Source: Adineta vaga
Lineage: Eukaryota > Animalia > Rotifera
Length of the DNA: 64,000 nucleotides
Direction: 5' to 3'
Assembly: GCA_021613535.1 (NCBI GenBank)
Contig: CP075494.1
Span: 7,998,001-8,062,000 of the forward strand
Position numbers and translations under genes: made by a program. Numbering within the stretch: the stretch's first letter is position 1; every line of letters begins with the position of its first letter. The notes under the pieces were generated by a model. The model was given only the letters and a program-made list of their open reading frames with translations, did not search any database and was not told the origin of the DNA. Shown here one piece after another: positions 23,994 to 51,994 of the stretch.

Positions 23994-24676
23994 TCAACGA
24001 AATTGAAAAACACTCGATGTTTTTTGTGGAACATGTTCTAAAGTTAAACTTTGAAACCATTCAGATGAATTATGATAATAATAACCTTGTAATTTCCCTG
24101 TACTTAATTGTAGACAAATATAATAGAAACCAGCAAAAGATGCACCTAGACAATAGAAAAGAAAACATCATGTCTATATCATCAATGAAAATCAATTCAT
24201 TTCAACACACCAGTTATATTTCGAACAGTATGATCAGGAACAAGAAAATGTTCTTTCCATCTCATGAAAACAAAATCTGAATTCACTCCACGTAGTAATT
24301 GATCATAATCAAATGAATCATTATTAAATGTGTCTACGTAAGGTAAGAATGCATCAAATTTACTCCAATGTTGTCGATCCACTTCTTCATCAGCTTCCCA
24401 TTTACGTGTTAGAAATGGATAACGTTTCGAGATGATTTCTGCATCGAAAAATGTCGATAATTTTGGATATTCATCAATTAAACCAGTAATTCCCAAATAT
24501 CCACATATATATGAACGTTCTAAATCTACATGATGGAAAATAACATCAACATTATAAGATTTGCCTTTCGATTTTTGATTGCCAGTAAACCGAGATGATG
24601 GACAGAGGATTGAAATATTTTTATTTGTTGTACCCAAATTCATATCGGAGAATTCCAATGAGCCTAATAGTTTCAT
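23994..24676 (-). CDS. GID4: GID4/Vid24 (CTLH complex Pro/N-degron receptor), 2 exons
   Basis: [80 protein letters not shown]|[26 protein letters not shown]. Confidence 0.96.
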
Positions 24677-24957
24677 TTTTTGTTTTGAAACTTGATTTGT
24701 GAATAAGGGACGGATATTTAGGCAATAAAGAAAAGAAATCAAAAAGAACAGAACAGAACAAATAAACAAAAACTAGGTAGAAGAAATAGAAAAATCACCA
24801 ATGAGATCTTTCCAATGAATAGAGGTCGCTAAGTTTCTGCATGAATAATCGAATATTCGTATTAATTCATTTATTAATATCAAAGTAGAAAATGTTGTCT
24901 AGATCTGTACACAAAATAAAACTAGAAAGGAGAAAACACATGATAAAATATTGAAAT

Positions 24958-40499: not shown

Positions 40500-41147
40500 C
40501 TACCGTTGTTTTTTTCTTTTAAATTTAAAATAAAAGTAATACATTATATCCACTTCTCATGTAAACTTATTATTTAACTCTCTTCGAATATCATATTAGG
40601 CATTAAACAATACAATCGATATAATGTATAATTATGATCAAATTTTAATTTGAAAATGCAATTCTTTTTCTTGTTCTGTGAAACATGCAGTTGCCATTGC
40701 AATCAATGAATAACAAATATGTTTAAAGATTGCACTACTTCCTTCTTGACTTATGGATTGAATTGCATGATGATATTTCAGAGAGAGAGAGAGAGAGCAC
40801 GTTCTTCTACGTTTAATCAAAGTTCAAACTAGAATAAAGTATTTATCTATATGCAATAAATTATCCTTTTGTCATTTCATTCAAATTCAAACTATTAAGA
40901 AGATAATGAATTCTCAATTGAAAAATGTCTCGACATTTTTTTATCATATTTAAACAACTAGACAATTGATACTATATTAAATAAATTTATTTTACCTGCG
41001 AATGTAAGTAAGTGCCATCTGTTGTAATTGTATCTATGTTAGTTGGTTGGTCGATATTTTCGTGACTCATAATTGTTTGATTTGCCGGTGTATTACATCG
41101 TGTTATTTCATTTTATTTCCAATTGATCATAATTTCACAGTAGTTAA

Positions 41148-42726
41148 ATGCCGAGTACAATCTGTGTGTCATGTCAGGGCCAACGGCCAGCTGCTCTTGT
41201 ACGTCCAAAAACAAGTGAACCATATTGTAAACTATGCTTTTTCGAAGCATTCGAGCGTGAAATACATGAAACGATTGTTAAAGAACAATTATTCAAATCC
41301 GGTGAAACTATCGCTGTTGCTGCAAGTGGTGGCAAAGGTATTTAAAAGAAAAAAAAACGAAATTTATACTTGATTATAATCACTAATGGAACAATTTAGA
41401 TTCAACTGTTCTTGCTCATGTAATGAAATTATTAAATGAAAGACATTCGTATGGTCTTAAACTTGTTCTACTATCTATTGATGAAGGTATTACAGGTTAT
41501 CGAGATGATTCACTTGAAACAGTTAAACGTAATCAACAACAATATGATTTGCCCTTAATTATACTTACGTATAAAGAATTATACGGTTGGAGTATGGTAA
41601 TGAACTGTAAAATTCGAATGAGCAATATACATTTATATATGTGTCTATTTTATAGGATGAAATTGTTAAAGCAGTGGGACGTAAAAATAACTGTAAGTGC
41701 TTAGCTTTTTTTTCTACCAAAGACAAAATATCAGAATTTTATTTTGTTATAACAAATTTCTAAATCAGCATGACTATCTATTTTTGAATGTAAGTTTACA
41801 AGGTTACGACATAAAAAGTAATGTCCTTTCGAAGGTTAGATGAAAAAAAAAGTAGGAAATAGTTGAAGTTTCTCGTGATTAAATGGTTATGTATATTTTT
41901 AATGTCATTTTATATCGAGCTAATGTTCTTGTAATAGAAAAAAGATAGATTACAAAACTTGATTTAAAATTTATCGATAGAAAGAGTTCAATTCTCTCAT
42001 TTTATCTTTCATAGGTACATTCTGTGGTGTTTTTCGTCGTCAAGCTCTTGATCGTGGTGCAATGAAGTTATCTGTTAATAAAATTGCTACTGGTCATAAT
42101 GCTGATGATATTGCTGAAACTATTCTAATGAATATTCTTCGTGGTGATATAGCACGATTAAAACGTTGTACATCGATTATAACCGGTGATGAAAATGATG
42201 AAAACGAAGGATCTGTAATACCTCGATGTAAACCATTAAAATATGCTTATGAAAAGGAAATTGTTCTTTATGCATTTTACAAACGCTTGGATTATTTTTC
42301 GACTGAATGTCTCTATTCTCCTAATGCATATCGTGGAAATATTCGAACATATATTAAAGATCTAGAACGTTTAAGACCATCATCTATTATCGATATAATT
42401 CATAGTGGTGAACAATTATTAGTTAAACAAACAGCAAAAATGCCTGTTCAACGTGTTTGTGAACGATGTTCTTATTGTTCATCGATGCCAGTCTGTAAAG
42501 CATGTTTGTTAATTGAAGGTTTGAACAAAGGTGTACCAAAATTAGGTATTGGAAAAACAGAACGGTATCGAAAAGAAATGCAAAAGAAAGATGAATGTTG
42601 CAGTAAGTCAATTAACTATATTCATATCAAATGAGAAACGTTTTTGTTTTTCTTCTTTTTTCATTAGATGATCAATCTTTGTGTCATTGTATGAAAGAAA
42701 AACTAACAGTGAATGAAGATAAATAA
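41148..42726 (+). CDS. CTU1: Cytoplasmic tRNA 2-thiolation protein 1 (Ncs6/CTU1), 5 exons
   Basis: [25 protein letters not shown] (PP-loop), [67 protein letters not shown]. Confidence 0.97.
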
Positions 42727-42836
42727 GATAAAATTGAAAAACAAATAAACAAACACAAACATGTGTTTTCCTTTTGTTTTTCGAGTCATATATTTTGTTT
42801 GATTTTCAGATAGATTTGAGTATTTTATTTTTTAAA

Positions 42837-45800
42837 ATGTATGGTGGTAGGAACAGACGATCTTCATCTACATTGTCTCAATCTATCTATACTGACGAAT
42901 CAAATACGAATACATCTACATTAAGTGAATCAGCATGCCTTCCAATCGGTTGTTCCGTGAGTGCCAAATATCGAGGAGCATTTTGTTCAGGTAAATCTAT
43001 AAAAAAAAACGAAAAGAAAACTTCTTCATCAAAGCTTTGTTTTGTTCTAGCTCAAGTGAAAACAGTAGCAAAGGAAGTGAAAGTTAAAGTAACATTATTG
43101 ACTACAAATGATACGATAACTATTTCTGACGAACAAATTGTTCAACCTGCTTTATTACGTGTTGGTCGTATCGTAACAGTACGTTTACCAATATCGATTC
43201 GTCATGAAGCTACACCACATCTATCACGTAGTGGTCTAGCAGCAATTATAAATGCGAGTAATAACTGCGAAGAAAAACAAGCAACAATTAAACGAATTTA
43301 TGATAATAGTATTTATACAGTCGTATTCAATGATGGTGATGAAAAATCTTTAAGACGTTCATCACTTTGTTTACAAGGTATTCGTTTATATCAAAATCAA
43401 ATTGATCAACAAAAACTTCTCGAAGACATTCCAACACCAACCATATTTACAAATAGTAATGATATGACATCCATTGTTGCTGTTCAACGTAATGGAACAA
43501 ATAATCATCATGCATTTCCAGCTTTAATACTTAAACGTAAATCATTAGCAGATTATATGTGGATAAAAAGTTTTCTCGATGGTCGAGAATATATTGTTCA
43601 TAAACGTGATGATGTTCATTCGTATAAGAATAATTCCGAAATTCAATCATTATGTCGATCAACATCGAAACAAGCAACGAAAGCGTGTGAAAAATTTATT
43701 AAATATAATCAAATCCCAGTTATTTGGCAAAAGAAAAAGAAGAAAATTGTGATAAATGATTCTAATGAAGAAAAAAATCAAAGTGATAATGAATCGAATA
43801 CGAGTGTCACAGATGTTGATGATAGTGATGAAGAAACAACGAAAGAAAAAGATTCATTTGTAGCACAATTATTTGCTTTTATGGATGATAGAGGTTAATT
43901 TAATTAGATCTTATAGAAATTCTTTATTAATAATATCTTTTTCTAGGTACACCAATAAACAGTATTTCAAAAGTTCATAATTATGATATTGATCTTCATC
44001 GTTTATTTAAAATTGTTCGACAATATGGAGGATATAATAAAGTAATTACTACATATATATATATATATATATTTGATGAGAATTAGTCATGAATCTATCT
44101 ATTCTCTTTTTTTTTATACAGGTTATGAAAAATGATCTATGGGGTAAAGTATACATCAAAATGGGTTTGCCCGATGAATCATCACCTAAAAATAATCGAT
44201 TGATTGAAAATGCTTATAGAAAGTTTGTAGATATATGTTTAATAAGTAGAATATCTATCATTATTAATGTATATTTATCTAGATATTTATTTGCTTATGA
44301 AGATTTATCAAAAAAATTAGGTACAATAACTGCTCCAAGTGCATATTTTGGTGGACGAACAAGTCTAAGTAGTGATTCAAGACGAAGTTTAATTCGTGTT
44401 CGACAATTATCGGATGAGAAGAATAAATCAAAATATAATTTAACTTTAAATAAACGTCAAGTATATAGATTTGAAAATGATTCGTAAGAATAGAATCAAT
44501 TGTATTCTTTAATTTAGTCTTCAAAAAGACAATCGGTTGATTCGAAACCAATATTAACTTCAATAAAACCTCGTCGAAAAAGGTTGGTGATTAATAAAAC
44601 TAGATCATCAAATGTTCTTTCATCGAGTACTTCCGATTCGGATACATCTGATAATGAAACAACTAATTCATCGACATTTTCAAATAATAACAAAATCAAA
44701 AAACAACCGATAAATTCACCATTGAAAAAATCAATATTTCGTTCAGATGAGAAAAAACAAATAATTGATCATAAGAATTTATCTTCATCAGGAAATCCTA
44801 CACAAAAATCAACATCGATGAAAAAGATCAGTGCAACGAATGATACTGAAAATGATATGAAACCAGTTATAAAAATTGCGAAAATATCTGATGAAATTTT
44901 GTAAGTTAAACAGTTAAATAAATTTTCATTTCCTATCATCAATCATTTTCTTTTAGAAAAGAATCAATATTAGCAACACCTAAACTTCATCGAAAGGAAC
45001 CAACGAAATTACACGATCGAGAACAAACAAAACCCTATCCATTATTATCAGAAGACTTTAAAAAAACGGGAACACATAATTTAACACCTTTACCCGTTAC
45101 ACCTGTATCACCATCACCTCCGCCTTCCAATACTGACGAATCACCGAACTTCTCTTCGCTTCCAACGACTAATCAACATAACAATCATTCATTTGATGAT
45201 ATGCCAGGTAAATCAACTTCTTTCTTTTCTATAACTTCTAATTCATTCTTTATTCAAAAAGTTCTTGATGTTCCTATGACATTGCCAACTTTAATTCCAT
45301 CATCAACTACCAATAATACCGAATTTCTTTCATCATGCTCAACTAAACGATCGTATTCCGAAGATAATTTTGATTTTACTTACAAAACTGATGAACAATC
45401 AACTCCATCAAAACGCTCAAGATCATCTTTAGATAGTAATGATACAAACAGGTAAAATATATCATATTTTTAAAACAAATAATACTCAATTATTCCTTTC
45501 TATCTAGTAGTAGTAAACAATCTACAAATCGATTCACATATGCTGACGTTCTTGTGAATGATATATTATCTATAAAACGAGATATTAATCGAAAGAAACA
45601 ATATTCTGTTCGATGTCTAGAAAAAAATGATCGTACCAAGGAATTACGTGTTCAGTACATTGATTTAGATTCAAAGTAAAACGATTGAATTGAATATATA
45701 TGATTTGTAACTGATTGTGTTCTATTGATTTTTAGAAATGATGAATGGATTGAATTCGAACAGATTGTTAAACGTCAATATAATTCTAATGAAGATGAAA

Positions 45801-47257
45801 TCAATGATAAGTCAAATGTATCATTAATAACAATTGAAGATGATCAACGAAAAGTAGAAAATAAGAAAGTCACTACAAGTGAACAAGATGATGGAAGTAA
45901 GTTTATTTCTCAAATTGAATTTTATACCAAATCATCTATTTTCGGTATTTAGTATGGAAAAGTTTAGAAATAATATCATTAAGTGAAAATGATGTTGTCA
46001 CAAATTCAGCAACGAATCAAATTAATGAAGTGAATCATCAAGATATTCTGTAAGTTTGCTAGATGCCTACTTGATGTATCTTATTATGATGAGTCAGTTA
46101 AAATTATCTTTGAATCACGATCTACTCTGTTTTTATTAATTCATATTTCATATATTTGTATAAATGAATAGTTCATCCGATCAAACAACAGAATTTCAAC
46201 AAATTACATCTCCAACTGCTAGTGAAAATATCATCATCATTAATATCGATGATGTCTTAGAATCTACAGATGATAATCATGATCATCAAACATCGAATTT
46301 AAAGATTATTTCTACCGAAAGCGTTCATATTGATGATAATATAAATACATCTGATATGTAAATATCTTCTTATATCTTCGAAATATATTCTTTTATTCTC
46401 ATTCTTTACTTTAGTTTTCTACATCCAGTATATGATAAAGAAGAGATTATTGATAATTCTCCAATAGATGCATTTCTTCCAAATATTCAACAACCAACTT
46501 CACCTATTGATAATCGTCGTGCTTTAACACGTCAACAAAAACGACGTACATTGAGAGAACCATCTGTATCATCAAAGAAACGAACGAGATTAGATACAGA
46601 TTTAAATAGTAATTATTCTATGGATAATCTTTCCAATAATAATGAACAGAATTCATGTTTCAATGAACAACAAACGATCGAAAGTATGTCTCATTTTTGA
46701 ATGTTAATATTGATTTAACTGATTGTTCTAGTAAAACGATATCGAATAGGAGGAAAACGTGGAGGAAAACGAACAGTTAATCAAACAGGTATATTAATCA
46801 TGTGTTTGTATTCTTTTCTATTTAAAATAATTCATTTTAGATAATGAAAACGAAGATTCTCATGTGAATTCTTTAGTAAATTCTACATTGAGACAACAAT
46901 TAGAAGATATGTTTAAAAATCGAACGAGTCGTTACAATTTTCTTGATCTTAGTAAGAATTTCTTTTACATACTTCTCAATTATAACTCTCTTCATGTAAT
47001 TTAGACAATGATATTACAGGTGACGATCGTTTAGCACATTTAAAAGATCATATGCGCCAATGCCAAAAAGTCTTTCTCAATTTAAAAAGTGCCTTAACCA
47101 AAATCGAAAAACAAAGAAAAGTATTTCTTCGACGACAAAAATCTATAGGTATGTCAAATCTATTGGAAATAAATCTGTAATACAGTCTTTGATTTCATCT
47201 TTTCTAGTTTCTCAGCCAACAACAAACGACCTTCTATTGCCATCTCCATGTAAATGA
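42837..47257 (+). CDS. ARID4: ARID4/RBBP1-like chromatin protein (Tudor, PWWP-like, ARID, chromobarrel, C-terminal coiled coil)
   Basis: LPIGCSVSAKYRGAFCSAQVK, DNSIYTVVFNDGDEKSLRRSSLCLQG, FPALI, KSFLDG, EKDSFVAQLFAFMDDRGTPIN..DLHRLFKIV..GGYNKV..W, NAYRKYLFAYE, LRVQY..NDEWI, DRLAHLKDHMRQ..FLNLKS. Confidence 0.93.
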
Positions 47258-47451
47258 AAATTTCATTCATCGATTTTTGTTTTCTTGTTTGTTTTTTTCT
47301 TTTTTGTTTTGGTTATTATTTGTTACGTAAAAATCCGTTACAGTGCGTTCTTTCTTCAAACTGTTCTTGAAAATGAATAGATATATTTTCATTTGTTTTA
47401 TGAATAGAAACCGATTTCTAATAATTGTGATTTTTCTAGTTTGTAGTTTTC

Positions 47452-48300
47452 ATGGAGGTTTATAAATTAACGAATCTACCTGATTCACTTTATTACATAC
47501 CAAATTTTATAACCAATGAAGAAGAAGAACAATTACTTTCACATGTTAATAATGTTCCACGAACTCGTTGGGTACAACTAAGAAATCGACGATTACAAAA
47601 TTGGGGTGGACAACCACATGCGAAAGGAATGATTCAAACTGAACCATTGCCTAATTGGTTAGAACCATATACAGAACGAATACTACAACTTGGAAAAGAA
47701 ACGATTTTTTCTGATAGTTTTTTTCAATTCAATCATTGTTTAGTTAATGAATATGAAGCAGGTCAAGGTATTATGCCACATACGGATGGACCTGTTTATT
47801 TTCCAATCGTGACAACCATTTCTTTACAATCACATACAGTTATTGAATTCTATCGACCGATAGATAGTCTTAATACAGAGGTGAGATAAGATCGAGTGTT
47901 AAAATACTTCAGACTATTGATCTTATCTATAAAAACACTACATTTCGCAATAATTTTTCGTTCGAAATAGTTTAAAACTTCGAGTGATGATCATAACTAT
48001 TCCTTTTTCTTATCTATTTAGGAAGTATCATCGTTGTCGGATCGTTGTATTGCTCGAGTACTTCTTGAACCACGTAGTTTATTTATTGTTAAAGATAATA
48101 TGTATTCATATTATATGCATGGAATTGAAGAACGTCACGATGATCAAATCAATCGTGCATTGATTAGTAATTTTGATCGATGTAGTGAGAATATTCAAAG
48201 TAAAGATGAATTAGTATTAGCACGTACAACGCGAATATCTTTAACAATTCGACGTGTTGAAAAAACATCAAAACTACCACTTGGAATGATACGTAAATGA
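47452..48300 (+). CDS. ALKBH6: AlkB homolog 6 (2OG-Fe(II) dioxygenase), 2 exons
   Basis: YYIPNFITNEEE, WVQLRNRRLQNWGGQPH, NHCLVNEYEAGQGIMPHTDGP, LLEPRSL, YMHGI, RISLTIR. Confidence 0.96.
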
Positions 48301-48334
48301 AAATGACATTTTTTTATTTTTATTTTTATTTCAG

Positions 48335-49298
48335 ATGTTATTCCTTGGACGACTATTGACCAGTCGTTCATCATCTACCGTACTTCTACAATGTCGTTCT
48401 CGCATTTTTTCTTCATTGACATATAATAAACGATTATTTCCTCTACAAATAACGTCAGCAGCATCATTATCAAAAAGTCTTTTGCGATACTCATCAGATT
48501 CACTAGAGCAACCAAAAACTGATCGTGTATGGACTATACCAAATATTTTAACATTTGCTCGAATTGGTACATCGCCAATTCTTGGTTACTTGATTATAAC
48601 TCATCATTATCCAGCTGCATTATCACTTTTTCTCATCTCAGGTTTTACCGATTTACTTGATGGTTGGATTGCTCGTCGTTATCCATCACAAGCATCAGCA
48701 TTAGGTTCATTTCTTGATCCATTTGCTGATAAAATGCTTGTTGGAATTGTTGTCATATCACTTGCTTATGTTCATCTTATACCTTTATGGTTACTTGCTT
48801 TGATTCTTGGTCGTGATATAGTAATTATGTGTGTTGCAGCCTATCTTCAGAATTAAATCTGTACCACCACCAAGAACATTGAAGAAAATCTTAAATATGA
48901 AAAATGCAACTGTACAACTTTATCCAACATTTGTCAGTAAAGTAAGTTACGTAACGGAGACGCGTCTCAGATTTCTAATATCACTGAATACTGATCTATA
49001 TTAATTGCAGATAAAGCCTAAATGTCTATCCCTATGAGAATATGCTCGGCAGGATAACAAACGAAATATGTCTCTTTACTTTCAGGTAAATACTGGTGTT
49101 CAAATTGGATTGTTAACCTTATGTATGGCAGCACCAATTTTTGATTATCATCACACTGGTTGGATGTCAGTTATTTACGCATTGTCTGCTCTTTCTACTG
49201 GAGTATCATGGCTTTCTTATACGGGAAAAAGTGGTCGAGCAACATTTAAAATGCTTTCGCAACAATCGAAGACACCTCCTCCTTCATCTTCTTTGTAA
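48335..49298 (+). CDS. CRLS1: Cardiolipin synthase (CMP-forming); reading frame broken by a +1 frameshift at ~48848 in this sequence
   Basis: Mitochondrial-type presequence, WTIPNILTFARI, DLLDGWIAR..S.LGSFLDPFADK (CDP-alcohol phosphotransferase motif), LILGRD. The conserved continuation RIKSVPPPRTL..LYPTFVSK|VNTGVQ lies in the +1 frame. Confidence 0.92.
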
Positions 49299-49384
49299 TT
49301 ATATTTCTTTTCTTTTTTATACAAACAAAAACAAACAAGCACGTAGAATAAAACAGACAAAAAGAACAAAAAGATTGTTTTTCT

Positions 49385-51994
<2,610 letters not shown>

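Follow-up and report, generated by a model that had tools for sequence, protein, structure and literature searches.

[quoted passage not shown]

Introduction

[quoted passage not shown] The question is raised by a 64,000-nt stretch of Adineta vaga contig CP075494.1 (positions 7,998,001 to 8,062,000, the whole of which is referred to here as the window), in which four functionally unrelated genes, CTU1, ARID4, ALKBH6 and CRLS1, are arranged head to tail on the same strand, with gaps from stop codon to ATG of 111, 194 and 34 nt. A preliminary description, made from the sequence by itself, had identified this tight, co-oriented arrangement and described it accurately, except in giving the first gap as 110 nt.

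SL trans-splicing was reportedly established in bdelloids by Pouchkina-Stantcheva and Tunnacliffe in 2005, and monogononts are reported to lack the SL. The status of rotifer operons is given as ‘not determined’ in one overview (PMC2481426), and operons and polycistronic mRNAs are stated to be unreported in rotifers in a 2021 methods paper (PMC7986045), in keeping with the earlier remark that operons are not well characterised in this lineage; our literature search found no later report of operons in rotifers, nor of a gene layout of this kind. Were the run an operon, Rotifera would take a place beside nematodes, tunicates, flatworms and chaetognaths among operon-bearing animals, an independent addition to a small number, with a bearing on whether SL trans-splicing leads almost automatically to operons, and bdelloids and monogononts would provide a close pair in which to study operon origin. 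Operons here would also be relevant to annotation: fusions and distortions of these genes are already present in public models, ARID being joined to ALKBH6 in one Rotaria assembly and eight residues being omitted from the A. vaga CRLS1 model.

Results

Gene identities and surroundings

Features of the run are listed in Table 1. Assignments were made with single exons or ORFs, rather than joined spliced models, as protein queries. In an exon-wise Pfam scan, CTU1 exon 42017–42601 matched PF16503 (zn-ribbon_14) and PF01171 (PP-loop family), ALKBH6 matched PF13532 (2OG-FeII_Oxy_2) and CRLS1 matched PF01066 (CDP-OH_P_transf; 3e-26); RBB1NT in ARID4 scored 23.2 bits, slightly below the cut-off, and ARID (PF01388) was found on products of relatives. 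The same CTU1 exon shares 96% amino-acid identity with bdelloid contig L010, ALKBH6 shares 53–59% with named ALKBH6 homologues, and CRLS1 shares 99% with A. vaga protein I4U23_024446 and is single copy, no second copy being present anywhere in the A. vaga genome searched (6 contigs, 101 Mb). Exact-protein look-ups with the first CRLS1 ORF of the window and with the ALKBH6 product of L018, a relative's RNA contig, yielded no entry, in a collection from which the records of A. vaga itself appear to be missing. RNA contigs lack the last CTU1 intron (42603–42667) and the ALKBH6 intron (47881–48021), and ARID4 is spliced in them at 13 listed GT..AG joints, from 42988/43049 to 47145/47205, and at three further joints. 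Upstream of the run, two plus-strand ORF blocks lie approximately 600 nt apart (measured between ORF blocks, not exon ends), making the run unusually tight for its surroundings. Downstream, the gene after CRLS1 is a convergent Su(H)/CSL gene, and a convergent LAG1-DNAbind gene is found in relatives too. An Rfam scan of 40500–50000 detected no RNA family.

Table 1. Positions of the four genes and of the features between them, in window coordinates.
Feature	Position	Strand	Details
CTU1 (cytoplasmic tRNA 2-thiolation protein 1), first gene of the run	41148..42726	+	ATG 41148; stop TAA 42724-42726
CTU1 3′ end region	42722..42751	+	Stop TAA 42724-42726; AATAAG/GATAAA variants at stop; AATAAA 42744-42749
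ARID4 SL trans-splice acceptor, GATTTTCAG	42801..42809	+	Exon start 42810
ARID4-like gene (RBB1NT and ARID domains)	42838..47257	+	ATG 42838; stop TGA 47255-47257; many short introns
ARID4-ALKBH6 spacer, 194 nt	47258..47451	+	Conserved against Rotaria and other bdelloids
Conserved non-coding block	47380..47439	+	CTAAT branch-point-like motif, then TTTTTCTAG (ALKBH6 acceptor)
ALKBH6 (2OG-Fe(II) dioxygenase)	47452..48300	+	ATG 47452; stop TGA 48298-48300; 2 exons
ALKBH6-CRLS1 spacer, 34 nt	48301..48334	+	T-rich tract ending TTTCAG at the CRLS1 ATG
CRLS1 (cardiolipin synthase), last gene of the run	48335..49298	+	ATG 48335; PF01066

Processing signals at the junctions

Each downstream gene has a splice acceptor 0–28 nt 5′ of its ATG, and the pyrimidine tracts and AGs previously proposed were all found, at 42809, at 47439 (where TTTTTCTAG ends, a second TAG ending at 47446) and at 48334, where the TTTCAG of CRLS1 directly adjoins the ATG. 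Among 5,635 AG sites in the window, the three acceptors fell in the 93rd to 98th percentile of a 3′ splice-site matrix, which is only moderate evidence, the matrix having been trained on 15 RNA-confirmed introns of the locus, all ending TAG, and penalising CAG acceptors; the stronger evidence that these acceptors are real comes from SL RNA at 42810 and from conservation across bdelloids, both described below. Candidate poly(A) signals follow or overlap the upstream stop codons. The AATAAA attributed to the CTU1-ARID4 spacer is present at 42744, AATGAA overlaps the stop codons of ARID4 (47253–47258) and ALKBH6 (48296–48301), and an overlap of poly(A) signals with the ALKBH6 stop is common to all bdelloid lineages compared. 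The 34-nt spacer contains neither GT nor AATAAA, as had been observed.

A spliced leader on ARID4

The predicted ARID4 acceptor is a genuine SL trans-splice site. RNA contigs of runs X10 and X13, from two separate studies, carry a loose end, CTTACCAAG, before 42808, which together with the genomic AG at 42808/9 is exactly the last 11 nt of the 23-nt bdelloid SL, GGCTTATTACAACTTACCAAGAG (PMC3795323, Table 1); the SL tail is thus joined precisely at 42810, where addition had been predicted. A search allowing ≤1 mismatch found at least 42 SL RNA gene copies in the genome, each with the SL followed by a GTAAAT donor. All 42 share one SL exon, of which the tail on ARID4 is the canonical form, and no specialised, SL2-like second leader was found among them at this threshold. 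Since more than 50% of bdelloid mRNAs bear the SL whatever their gene context (PMC1925144), its presence on ARID4 is by itself no proof of an operon.

That generality suits an alternative in which the four are independent, closely packed genes, each with its own promoter, situated in the spacer or in coding or 3′ sequence of the gene before it, and each losing a short outron by SL trans-splicing; contigs that bridge two genes would then be outron-containing pre-mRNAs, or read-through tails merged by the assembler with the upstream message. The first junction is compatible with this account in that no RNA contig of any run covers 42751–42807, so that RNA bridging CTU1 and ARID4 was not seen, and in that contig depths in X1 are unequal (CTU1 49.5, ARID4 18–24). 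Against it, the CTU1 RNA contig in X1 appears, by depth accounting, to end at about 42750, approximately 59 nt before the ARID4 acceptor. CTU1 and ARID4 are predicted to be co-transcribed.

RNA joining ALKBH6 to CRLS1

The evidence for common transcription is more direct at the third junction, where five RNA contigs from three species run continuously from spliced ALKBH6 into CRLS1. In A. vaga, record 3 of X1 (1,806 nt) comprises 47579–47878 joined to 48020–48540 and beyond, such that the ALKBH6 intron is removed, the 34-nt spacer is bridged and CRLS1 is entered. Four further RNA-derived contigs from two other bdelloid species (L017 from one; L018, L019 and L020 from three samples of the other, 99.4–99.6% identical) join the two genes across spacers of 44 or 21 nt, and comparison with genomic contigs L014, L015 and L016 shows that both introns have been removed precisely. 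The claim that the 34-nt junction is transcribed through is therefore upheld by intron-free RNA in all three species. Overlapping molecules can be merged in De Bruijn contigs, and what a bridging contig demonstrates is therefore read-through over the junction, rather than one full-length bicistronic molecule. L018 starts 1 nt before the position homologous to the ALKBH6 acceptor and reaches the CRLS1 3′ UTR; L019, nearly identical to it, terminates in a poly(A) run at a place where genomic contig L016 has none. Together the two look like one mature, polyadenylated two-gene RNA, which weighs against independent genes. A fusion protein made by read-through of the ALKBH6 stop codon was ruled out, the two genes being in different frames (37 nt from stop to ATG).

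The same RNAs could instead represent a stable bicistronic mRNA that is rarely or never resolved. Translation of CRLS1 would then depend on reinitiation or leaky scanning, and the acceptor beside its AUG would see little use. Besides the resemblance of L018 and L019 to such a molecule, 4/4 RNA-derived contigs of relatives with full-length CRLS1 also contain ALKBH6, and 0/4 start with the SL. We nevertheless consider this very improbable, given the strong acceptor kept at the CRLS1 AUG in every bdelloid lineage examined, beside a spacer that is not itself conserved, and the poly(A) signals lying over the ALKBH6 stop in all lineages. Moreover, A. vaga RNA contigs break near 48335, and in X10 and X13 those of CRLS1 are 2–5 times deeper than those of ALKBH6 (70–76 and 8–36, respectively); being contig-wide, these depths are a weak indication of separate CRLS1 messages, and their inequality would also be expected of independent genes.

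No SL-bearing RNA contig was seen for ALKBH6 or CRLS1; placement of the RNA contigs masked 48302–48338, around the CRLS1 acceptor, and loose ends there were dropped. The SL|ATG-CRLS1 junction, represented by the CRLS1 start preceded by 8 nt of SL, had no match among metagenome contigs, in a collection evidently without short rotifer RNA contigs; the CRLS1 start alone matched 25 loci, rejected as chance matches because tblastn found no CRLS1, ALKBH6, ARID4 or CTU1 in them.

Conservation of gene order

Gene order proved to be conserved in Rotaria and other bdelloids, in a comparison made at this one locus. Rotaria sp. Silwood1 and bdelloid contig L007 retain ARID4-ALKBH6-CRLS1, L014 and L015 retain ALKBH6-CRLS1, and L010 retains CTU1-ARID4-ALKBH6. 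The rearrangement breakpoint coincides exactly with the 5′ edge of CTU1; the adjacency of ALKBH6 and CRLS1 is absent from the monogonont Brachionus calyciflorus. Gaps in relatives are similarly small (about 53 nt for CTU1-ARID4, 21–103 nt for ALKBH6-CRLS1). In L007, L014–L020 and Rotaria the CRLS1 acceptor always adjoins the ATG, although the sequence of the spacer that it terminates is unconserved. Spacers of 21–44 nt cannot hold a promoter, and because the ALKBH6-CRLS1 spacer is so short, a promoter private to CRLS1 would need to sit within ALKBH6 coding sequence in every lineage, a further difficulty for independent genes. For ALKBH6 and CRLS1 the case for an SL operon is strong.

The ARID4-ALKBH6 spacer

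The second junction differs from the others. The spacer is approximately 190–212 nt in both Adineta and Rotaria, its length and sequence being conserved, in contrast to introns and the other spacers; between A. vaga and Rotaria the block at 47380–47439 is identical at 52/59 positions (z 3.1 against shuffles; introns, z approximately 0). A 27-nt core of the block is unique in the 101-Mb genome. A general operon element comparable to the nematode Ur element was rejected on the ground that the block occurs once; it is possibly a processing element or an internal promoter, and the 194-nt gap could still house a promoter of compact form. Conservation well above that of introns is what a promoter would show, and the genome-unique blocks could be a core promoter, as independent genes would require. 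Taking the three junctions together, we regard independent genes throughout the run as rather unlikely.

A conserved spacer with a possible internal promoter also means that the run may be two operons, or a hybrid one, in place of a single four-gene polycistron: one unit of CTU1 and ARID4, and a second of ALKBH6 and CRLS1 with a promoter in the spacer, corresponding to what in C. elegans is called a hybrid operon. By depth accounting, 47350–47471 is uncovered in X1, X5 and X13, and L018 begins at the ALKBH6 acceptor without ARID4. On the other side, an X10 contig from which the last ARID4 intron has been removed extends to at least 47345, with coverage through 47471, past the ALKBH6 acceptor and ATG, suggested by depth accounting only; and at its 3′ end the conserved block has a canonical branch point followed by a pyrimidine tract and AG, such that splicing explains part of its conservation. 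A division into two units is possible, with a probability that we consider low but appreciable, and would make the claim of a four-gene polycistron wrong in extent and right in kind.

Discussion

The run is probably an SL-type operon or a closely linked pair of such operons. RNA polymerase II would read on from each gene into the next; upstream messages would be cut and polyadenylated right after the stop codon, by signals overlapping or closely following it; and the single 23-nt bdelloid SL, trans-spliced to an acceptor 0–28 nt before the AUG, would provide the downstream 5′ ends. ALKBH6 and CRLS1 may additionally have a promoter of their own in the conserved 194-nt spacer. The preliminary description had proposed a polycistron resolved by trans-splicing, of which SL addition to ARID4 and read-through from ALKBH6 into CRLS1 are now seen in RNA; the four-gene extent of the unit is a prediction, as is SL addition to ALKBH6 and CRLS1, which is suggested by the conservation of their acceptors among bdelloid families, that of CRLS1 directly adjoining the AUG, and for ALKBH6 by the start of a relative's RNA contig, L018, at the acceptor. 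Whether bdelloids in general have true single-SL operons, with spacers of 21–44 nt, older than the split between Adinetidae and Philodinidae and absent in monogononts, of which this run is an example and ALKBH6-CRLS1 a part that persists to some extent as polyadenylated bicistronic mRNA, is a proposition for and against which we see even chances.

The run shares with the bdelloid SL trans-splicing system at large its 23-nt leader and the GT donor of the SL RNA genes. In C. elegans operons, the order is poly(A) signal, U-rich spacer, trans-splice acceptor, and in the SL1-type operon of that species the sites of 3′ end formation and trans-splicing nearly coincide. The 111-nt CTU1-ARID4 junction is like the former and the 34-nt ALKBH6-CRLS1 junction resembles the latter, and an internal promoter, if present, would parallel those of C. 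elegans hybrid operons. From the SL2 type, however, the run differs in the one SL exon shared by the 42 copies found, in poly(A) signals that overlap stop codons and in inferred 3′ UTRs of about 20–25 nt. Tunicate operons have very short or near-absent spacers, acceptors just before the AUG and functionally unrelated housekeeping genes. The run is like tunicate and chaetognath operons in all three respects and, as in Ciona, Oikopleura and chaetognaths, one SL class would serve operonic and non-operonic genes alike, no operon-specific SL having been found in a chaetognath (PMC12460157). It is set apart from them by lineage (Rotifera, Bdelloidea), by SL sequence and by an SL seen on ARID4 alone, yet in layout it appears to resemble the operons of tunicates and chaetognaths more closely than the SL2 type of C. 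elegans.

Gene layout and identities

Four genes, CTU1, ARID4, ALKBH6 and CRLS1, follow one another closely along the forward strand, and direct reading of the sequence agrees with the preliminary description on their anatomy: they are co-oriented, the gaps are short and acceptors stand ahead of the downstream ATGs. These acceptors end at 42809 (ARID4), at 47439 and 47446 (ALKBH6) and at 48334 (CRLS1), the last adjoining its ATG. An AATAAA lies at 42744–42749, and the ALKBH6-CRLS1 spacer holds neither GT nor AATAAA, as had also been claimed. The four names are backed by Pfam scans made exon by exon, protein searches being run on single exons with spliced models never joined; that of ARID4 comes from a near-threshold RBB1NT match together with ARID matches on the products of relatives. 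Adineta vaga protein I4U23_024446 matches the CRLS1 exon at 99% identity. The assembly searched comprises six contigs (100.8 Mb), of which contig 5 carries the window; the window is AT-rich (30% GC), with GT..AG introns of approximately 50–140 nt. Upstream of the run lie two + strand ORF blocks with ~600 nt between them, and directly downstream of CRLS1 is a convergent Su(H)/CSL gene.

AG sites resembling acceptors also stand closely ahead of the ATG of CTU1, with which the run begins (window 41138–41147; CAG ending at 41140, TAG ending at 41143); none of these is found at the homologous place ahead of CTU1 in L010, from a bdelloid relative. CRLS1 carries an apparent 1-nt insertion at 48843–48856 (CTTCAGAAT versus CTTC-GTGTT in L007 and L008, from relatives), and the resulting frameshift leads to a TAA at 48854. 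CRLS1 has one copy in the genome and is intact apart from the insertion. To pass it, the A. vaga model in the public record (P0121, 265 aa) omits eight residues, MCVAAYLR, and the proteins of A. steineri and Rotaria run across the site without a break; judged from sequence, the insertion is probably an assembly indel.

Coordinates of the four genes, of the conserved spacer blocks and of the SL RNA gene copies
Feature	Position	Strand	Remark
CTU1	ATG 41148, stop 42724–42726	+	gap to ARID4 ATG 111 nt (sequence reading)
ARID4	ATG 42838, stop 47255–47257	+	gap to ALKBH6 ATG 194 nt (sequence reading)
ALKBH6	ATG 47452, stop 48298–48300	+	gap to CRLS1 ATG 34 nt (sequence reading)
CRLS1	ATG 48335, stop 49296–49298	+	convergent gene next (sequence reading)
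Conserved non-coding blocks, Adineta to Rotaria	47380–47439; 47340–47352	+	alignment
SL RNA gene copies	contigs C1, C2, C4, C5, C6; e.g. C5:9884356–9925969, C5:10912931–10934587		loci L001–L006; genome search

Spliced leader at the CTU1-ARID4 junction

The published rotifer spliced leader (SL) is GGCTTATTACAACTTACCAAGAG (PMC3795323, Table 1). Forty-two copies were found in the A. vaga genome; in every one a GTAAAT donor comes next, leading into an SL RNA body of ~85 nt. These copies begin with T where the published sequence has G, and many of the SL RNA genes form divergent head-to-head pairs ~154 nt apart, in arrays on contig 5.

RNA data were Logan contigs of four sequencing runs from four studies (X1, X5, X10 and X13), aligned to window 42550–48540 (5,991 letters); statements about individual aligned pieces hold among the pieces listed, alongside 80 others. 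Loose ends, where contig letters depart from the genome sequence, were taken outside the masked stretches 44040–44081, 47274–47320 and 48302–48338, the last of which contains the CRLS1 site at 48335. Because the GT..AG introns of the locus are removed in all four runs, these derive from RNA. Among the pieces listed, a 539-nt contig in both X10 and X13 opens with nine non-genomic letters, CTTACCAAG, and follows the genome from 42808. Together with the shared AG these letters read CTTACCAAGAG, which equals the final 11 nt of the SL, and the genome follows from 42810; ARID4 mRNA thus receives the SL by trans-splicing exactly at the acceptor that the preliminary description had predicted.

Depth accounting over the same interval places the CTU1 contig end at ~42750, and thus the intercistronic stretch is ~59 nt. 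The junction fits the classic operon layout, in which a poly(A) signal is separated by a U-rich spacer from an SL acceptor, and here the use of that acceptor by the SL is proven. The polycistron previously claimed was not seen at this junction, 42751–42807 being uncovered in all four runs, with no CTU1-ARID4 precursor among them. The main rival explanation is that independent promoters are embedded in the upstream genes and that the SL merely trims outrons; in its favour, SL use is common in bdelloids, reaching >50% of transcripts (PMC1925144).

Acceptors ended in TAG in 15/15 RNA-confirmed cis-introns of the locus (window 42600–48100), while CAG stands at the proven SL acceptor (42807–42809) and at the CRLS1 acceptor, a contrast that in so small a sample may be due to chance. 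At 43882, ~10 nt ahead of the exon end, a contig of X5 (organism B) parts from the window and goes on with 22 letters unrelated to it; divergence between the species may account for this, or else an alternative 3′ end.

Contigs bridging ALKBH6 and CRLS1

It is at the ALKBH6-CRLS1 junction that the claimed polycistron finds support. An X1 contig of 1,806 nt covers 47579–47878, skips the ALKBH6 intron, resumes over 48020–48540 and continues for ~980 nt beyond, spanning the 34-nt spacer from ALKBH6 into CRLS1. Among relatives, contigs L018 and L019 (two JGI samples) and L020 (a Logan run), with 99.4–99.6% mutual identity, hold ALKBH6 (complete or 5′-truncated), a 44-nt spacer and complete CRLS1; in L017, which comes from a different species and run, only 21 nt separate the C-terminal end of ALKBH6 from a CRLS1 without its intron. 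The RNA origin of L017–L020 is taken from intron removal and a poly(A) tail rather than from metadata: set against near-relative genomic contigs (L014, L015 and L016), the relatives' RNA-derived contigs have the ALKBH6 and CRLS1 introns both cut out precisely at GT..AG, and L019 terminates in an A-run ~25 nt past AATAAA, where genomic L016 differs in sequence.

ARID4 (window 47250–47261) and ALKBH6 (48293–48304) end in an identical string, GTAAATGAAAAT, in which AATGAA overlaps the TGA stop. AATAAA overlaps the ALKBH6 stop in most lineages (L014, L015, L018–L020 and Rotaria), L007 has an ATAAA-rich tract there, and L017 has neither within the stretch read; in L010, AATAAA overlaps the CTU1 stop. 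Poly(A) signals so placed imply 3′ UTRs of only ~20–25 nt. For the run as a whole, poly(A) sites are predicted at ~42750, ~47275–47285 and ~48315–48325. With the poly(A) site ahead of the acceptor, and SL addition directly at the AUG, mature ALKBH6 and CRLS1 ends would not overlap, and the bridging contigs therefore need RNA unprocessed at the junction. The pair is quite probably co-transcribed, although the contigs, as assemblies, cannot prove a single molecule spanning both genes end to end. A minor rival is that ALKBH6-CRLS1 works as an unresolved bicistronic mRNA. The CRLS1 acceptor, reading TTTCAG, TTTTAG or TTTAAG, adjoins the ATG in every lineage.

A conserved spacer between ARID4 and ALKBH6

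Positions 47350–47471 were uncovered in X1, X5 and X13. An X10 contig from which the final ARID4 intron is spliced out reaches at least 47345, and bin depths in that run fit continuous coverage to 47471, past both acceptor and ATG. L018 starts 15 nt ahead of the ALKBH6 ATG, at most 1 nt from the acceptor position of genomic relatives, as would be expected if assembly halts at a trans-splice branch.

The spacer is conserved in length, with ~212 nt in Rotaria and 194 nt in A. vaga, and also in sequence. Over the last 60 nt before the ALKBH6 acceptor, Adineta and Rotaria agree at 52/59 positions (z 3.1 versus shuffles); for introns and for the ALKBH6-CRLS1 spacer the likeness stays at shuffle level (z ~0). 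The 27-nt core, GATTTCTAATAATTGTGATTTTTCTAG, has a single occurrence in the genome and holds a branch-point-like CTAAT, a pyrimidine tract and AG, and conservation goes on upstream to the block ACAGTGCATC. On sequence grounds these blocks could serve as a promoter or act in splicing or in 3′ processing. ARID4-ALKBH6 is open to two readings, either a third intercistronic junction or an internal-promoter site, the latter making a hybrid operon.

Conservation across rotifers

The synteny comparison suggested by the preliminary description found the gene order kept in relatives. ARID4-ALKBH6-CRLS1, then convergent Su(H), is shared by three Rotaria sp. Silwood1 assemblies, L007 and L008; ALKBH6-CRLS1 by L014 and L015; and CTU1-ARID4-ALKBH6 by L010, whose CTU1-ARID4 spacer of ~53 nt follows the AATAAA over the stop with TTTTTTTTCAG and an ATG 14 nt further on. 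The monogonont Brachionus calyciflorus does not share the ALKBH6-CRLS1 pairing: the genes on either side of its ALKBH6 are a sugar transporter gene and a TTL gene. In L010, a GID4/Vac_ImportDeg homologue stands next to CTU1 on its upstream side, on the same strand (L010:319–1080); that of A. vaga lies at window 23994–24679 on the − strand, 16.5 kb from the run. This difference in position indicates a rearrangement with its breakpoint at the 5′ edge of CTU1, and hence of the run.

The public Rotaria models (L046–L048) are distorted: one assembly fuses ARID and ALKBH6 (1,324 aa), and in the others the ARID4 model stops ~1.4 kb early, missing a last small exon that lies ~212 nt upstream of ALKBH6.

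Comparison with known operons

The run is best read, with some reserve, as an operon, broadly understood, whose messages are resolved by the SL. Co-transcription of the ALKBH6-CRLS1 pair is well supported; one promoter common to all four genes is a tentative and rather doubtful proposal.

The SL was reportedly discovered in rotifers by a 2005 paper, and SL-type operons are known in nematodes, tunicates, flatworms and chaetognaths. Rotifer operons were entered as ‘ND’ in a 2008 table (PMC2481426), and according to a 2021 methods paper neither operons nor polycistronic mRNAs had been reported in rotifers (PMC7986045). No later report of them was found in the literature searched, which did not cover the 2005 SL-discovery paper; this agrees with the earlier remark that operons did not seem to be well characterised in this lineage. 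In chaetognaths, which have no operon-specific SL, 18% of genes lie in operons (PMC12460157).
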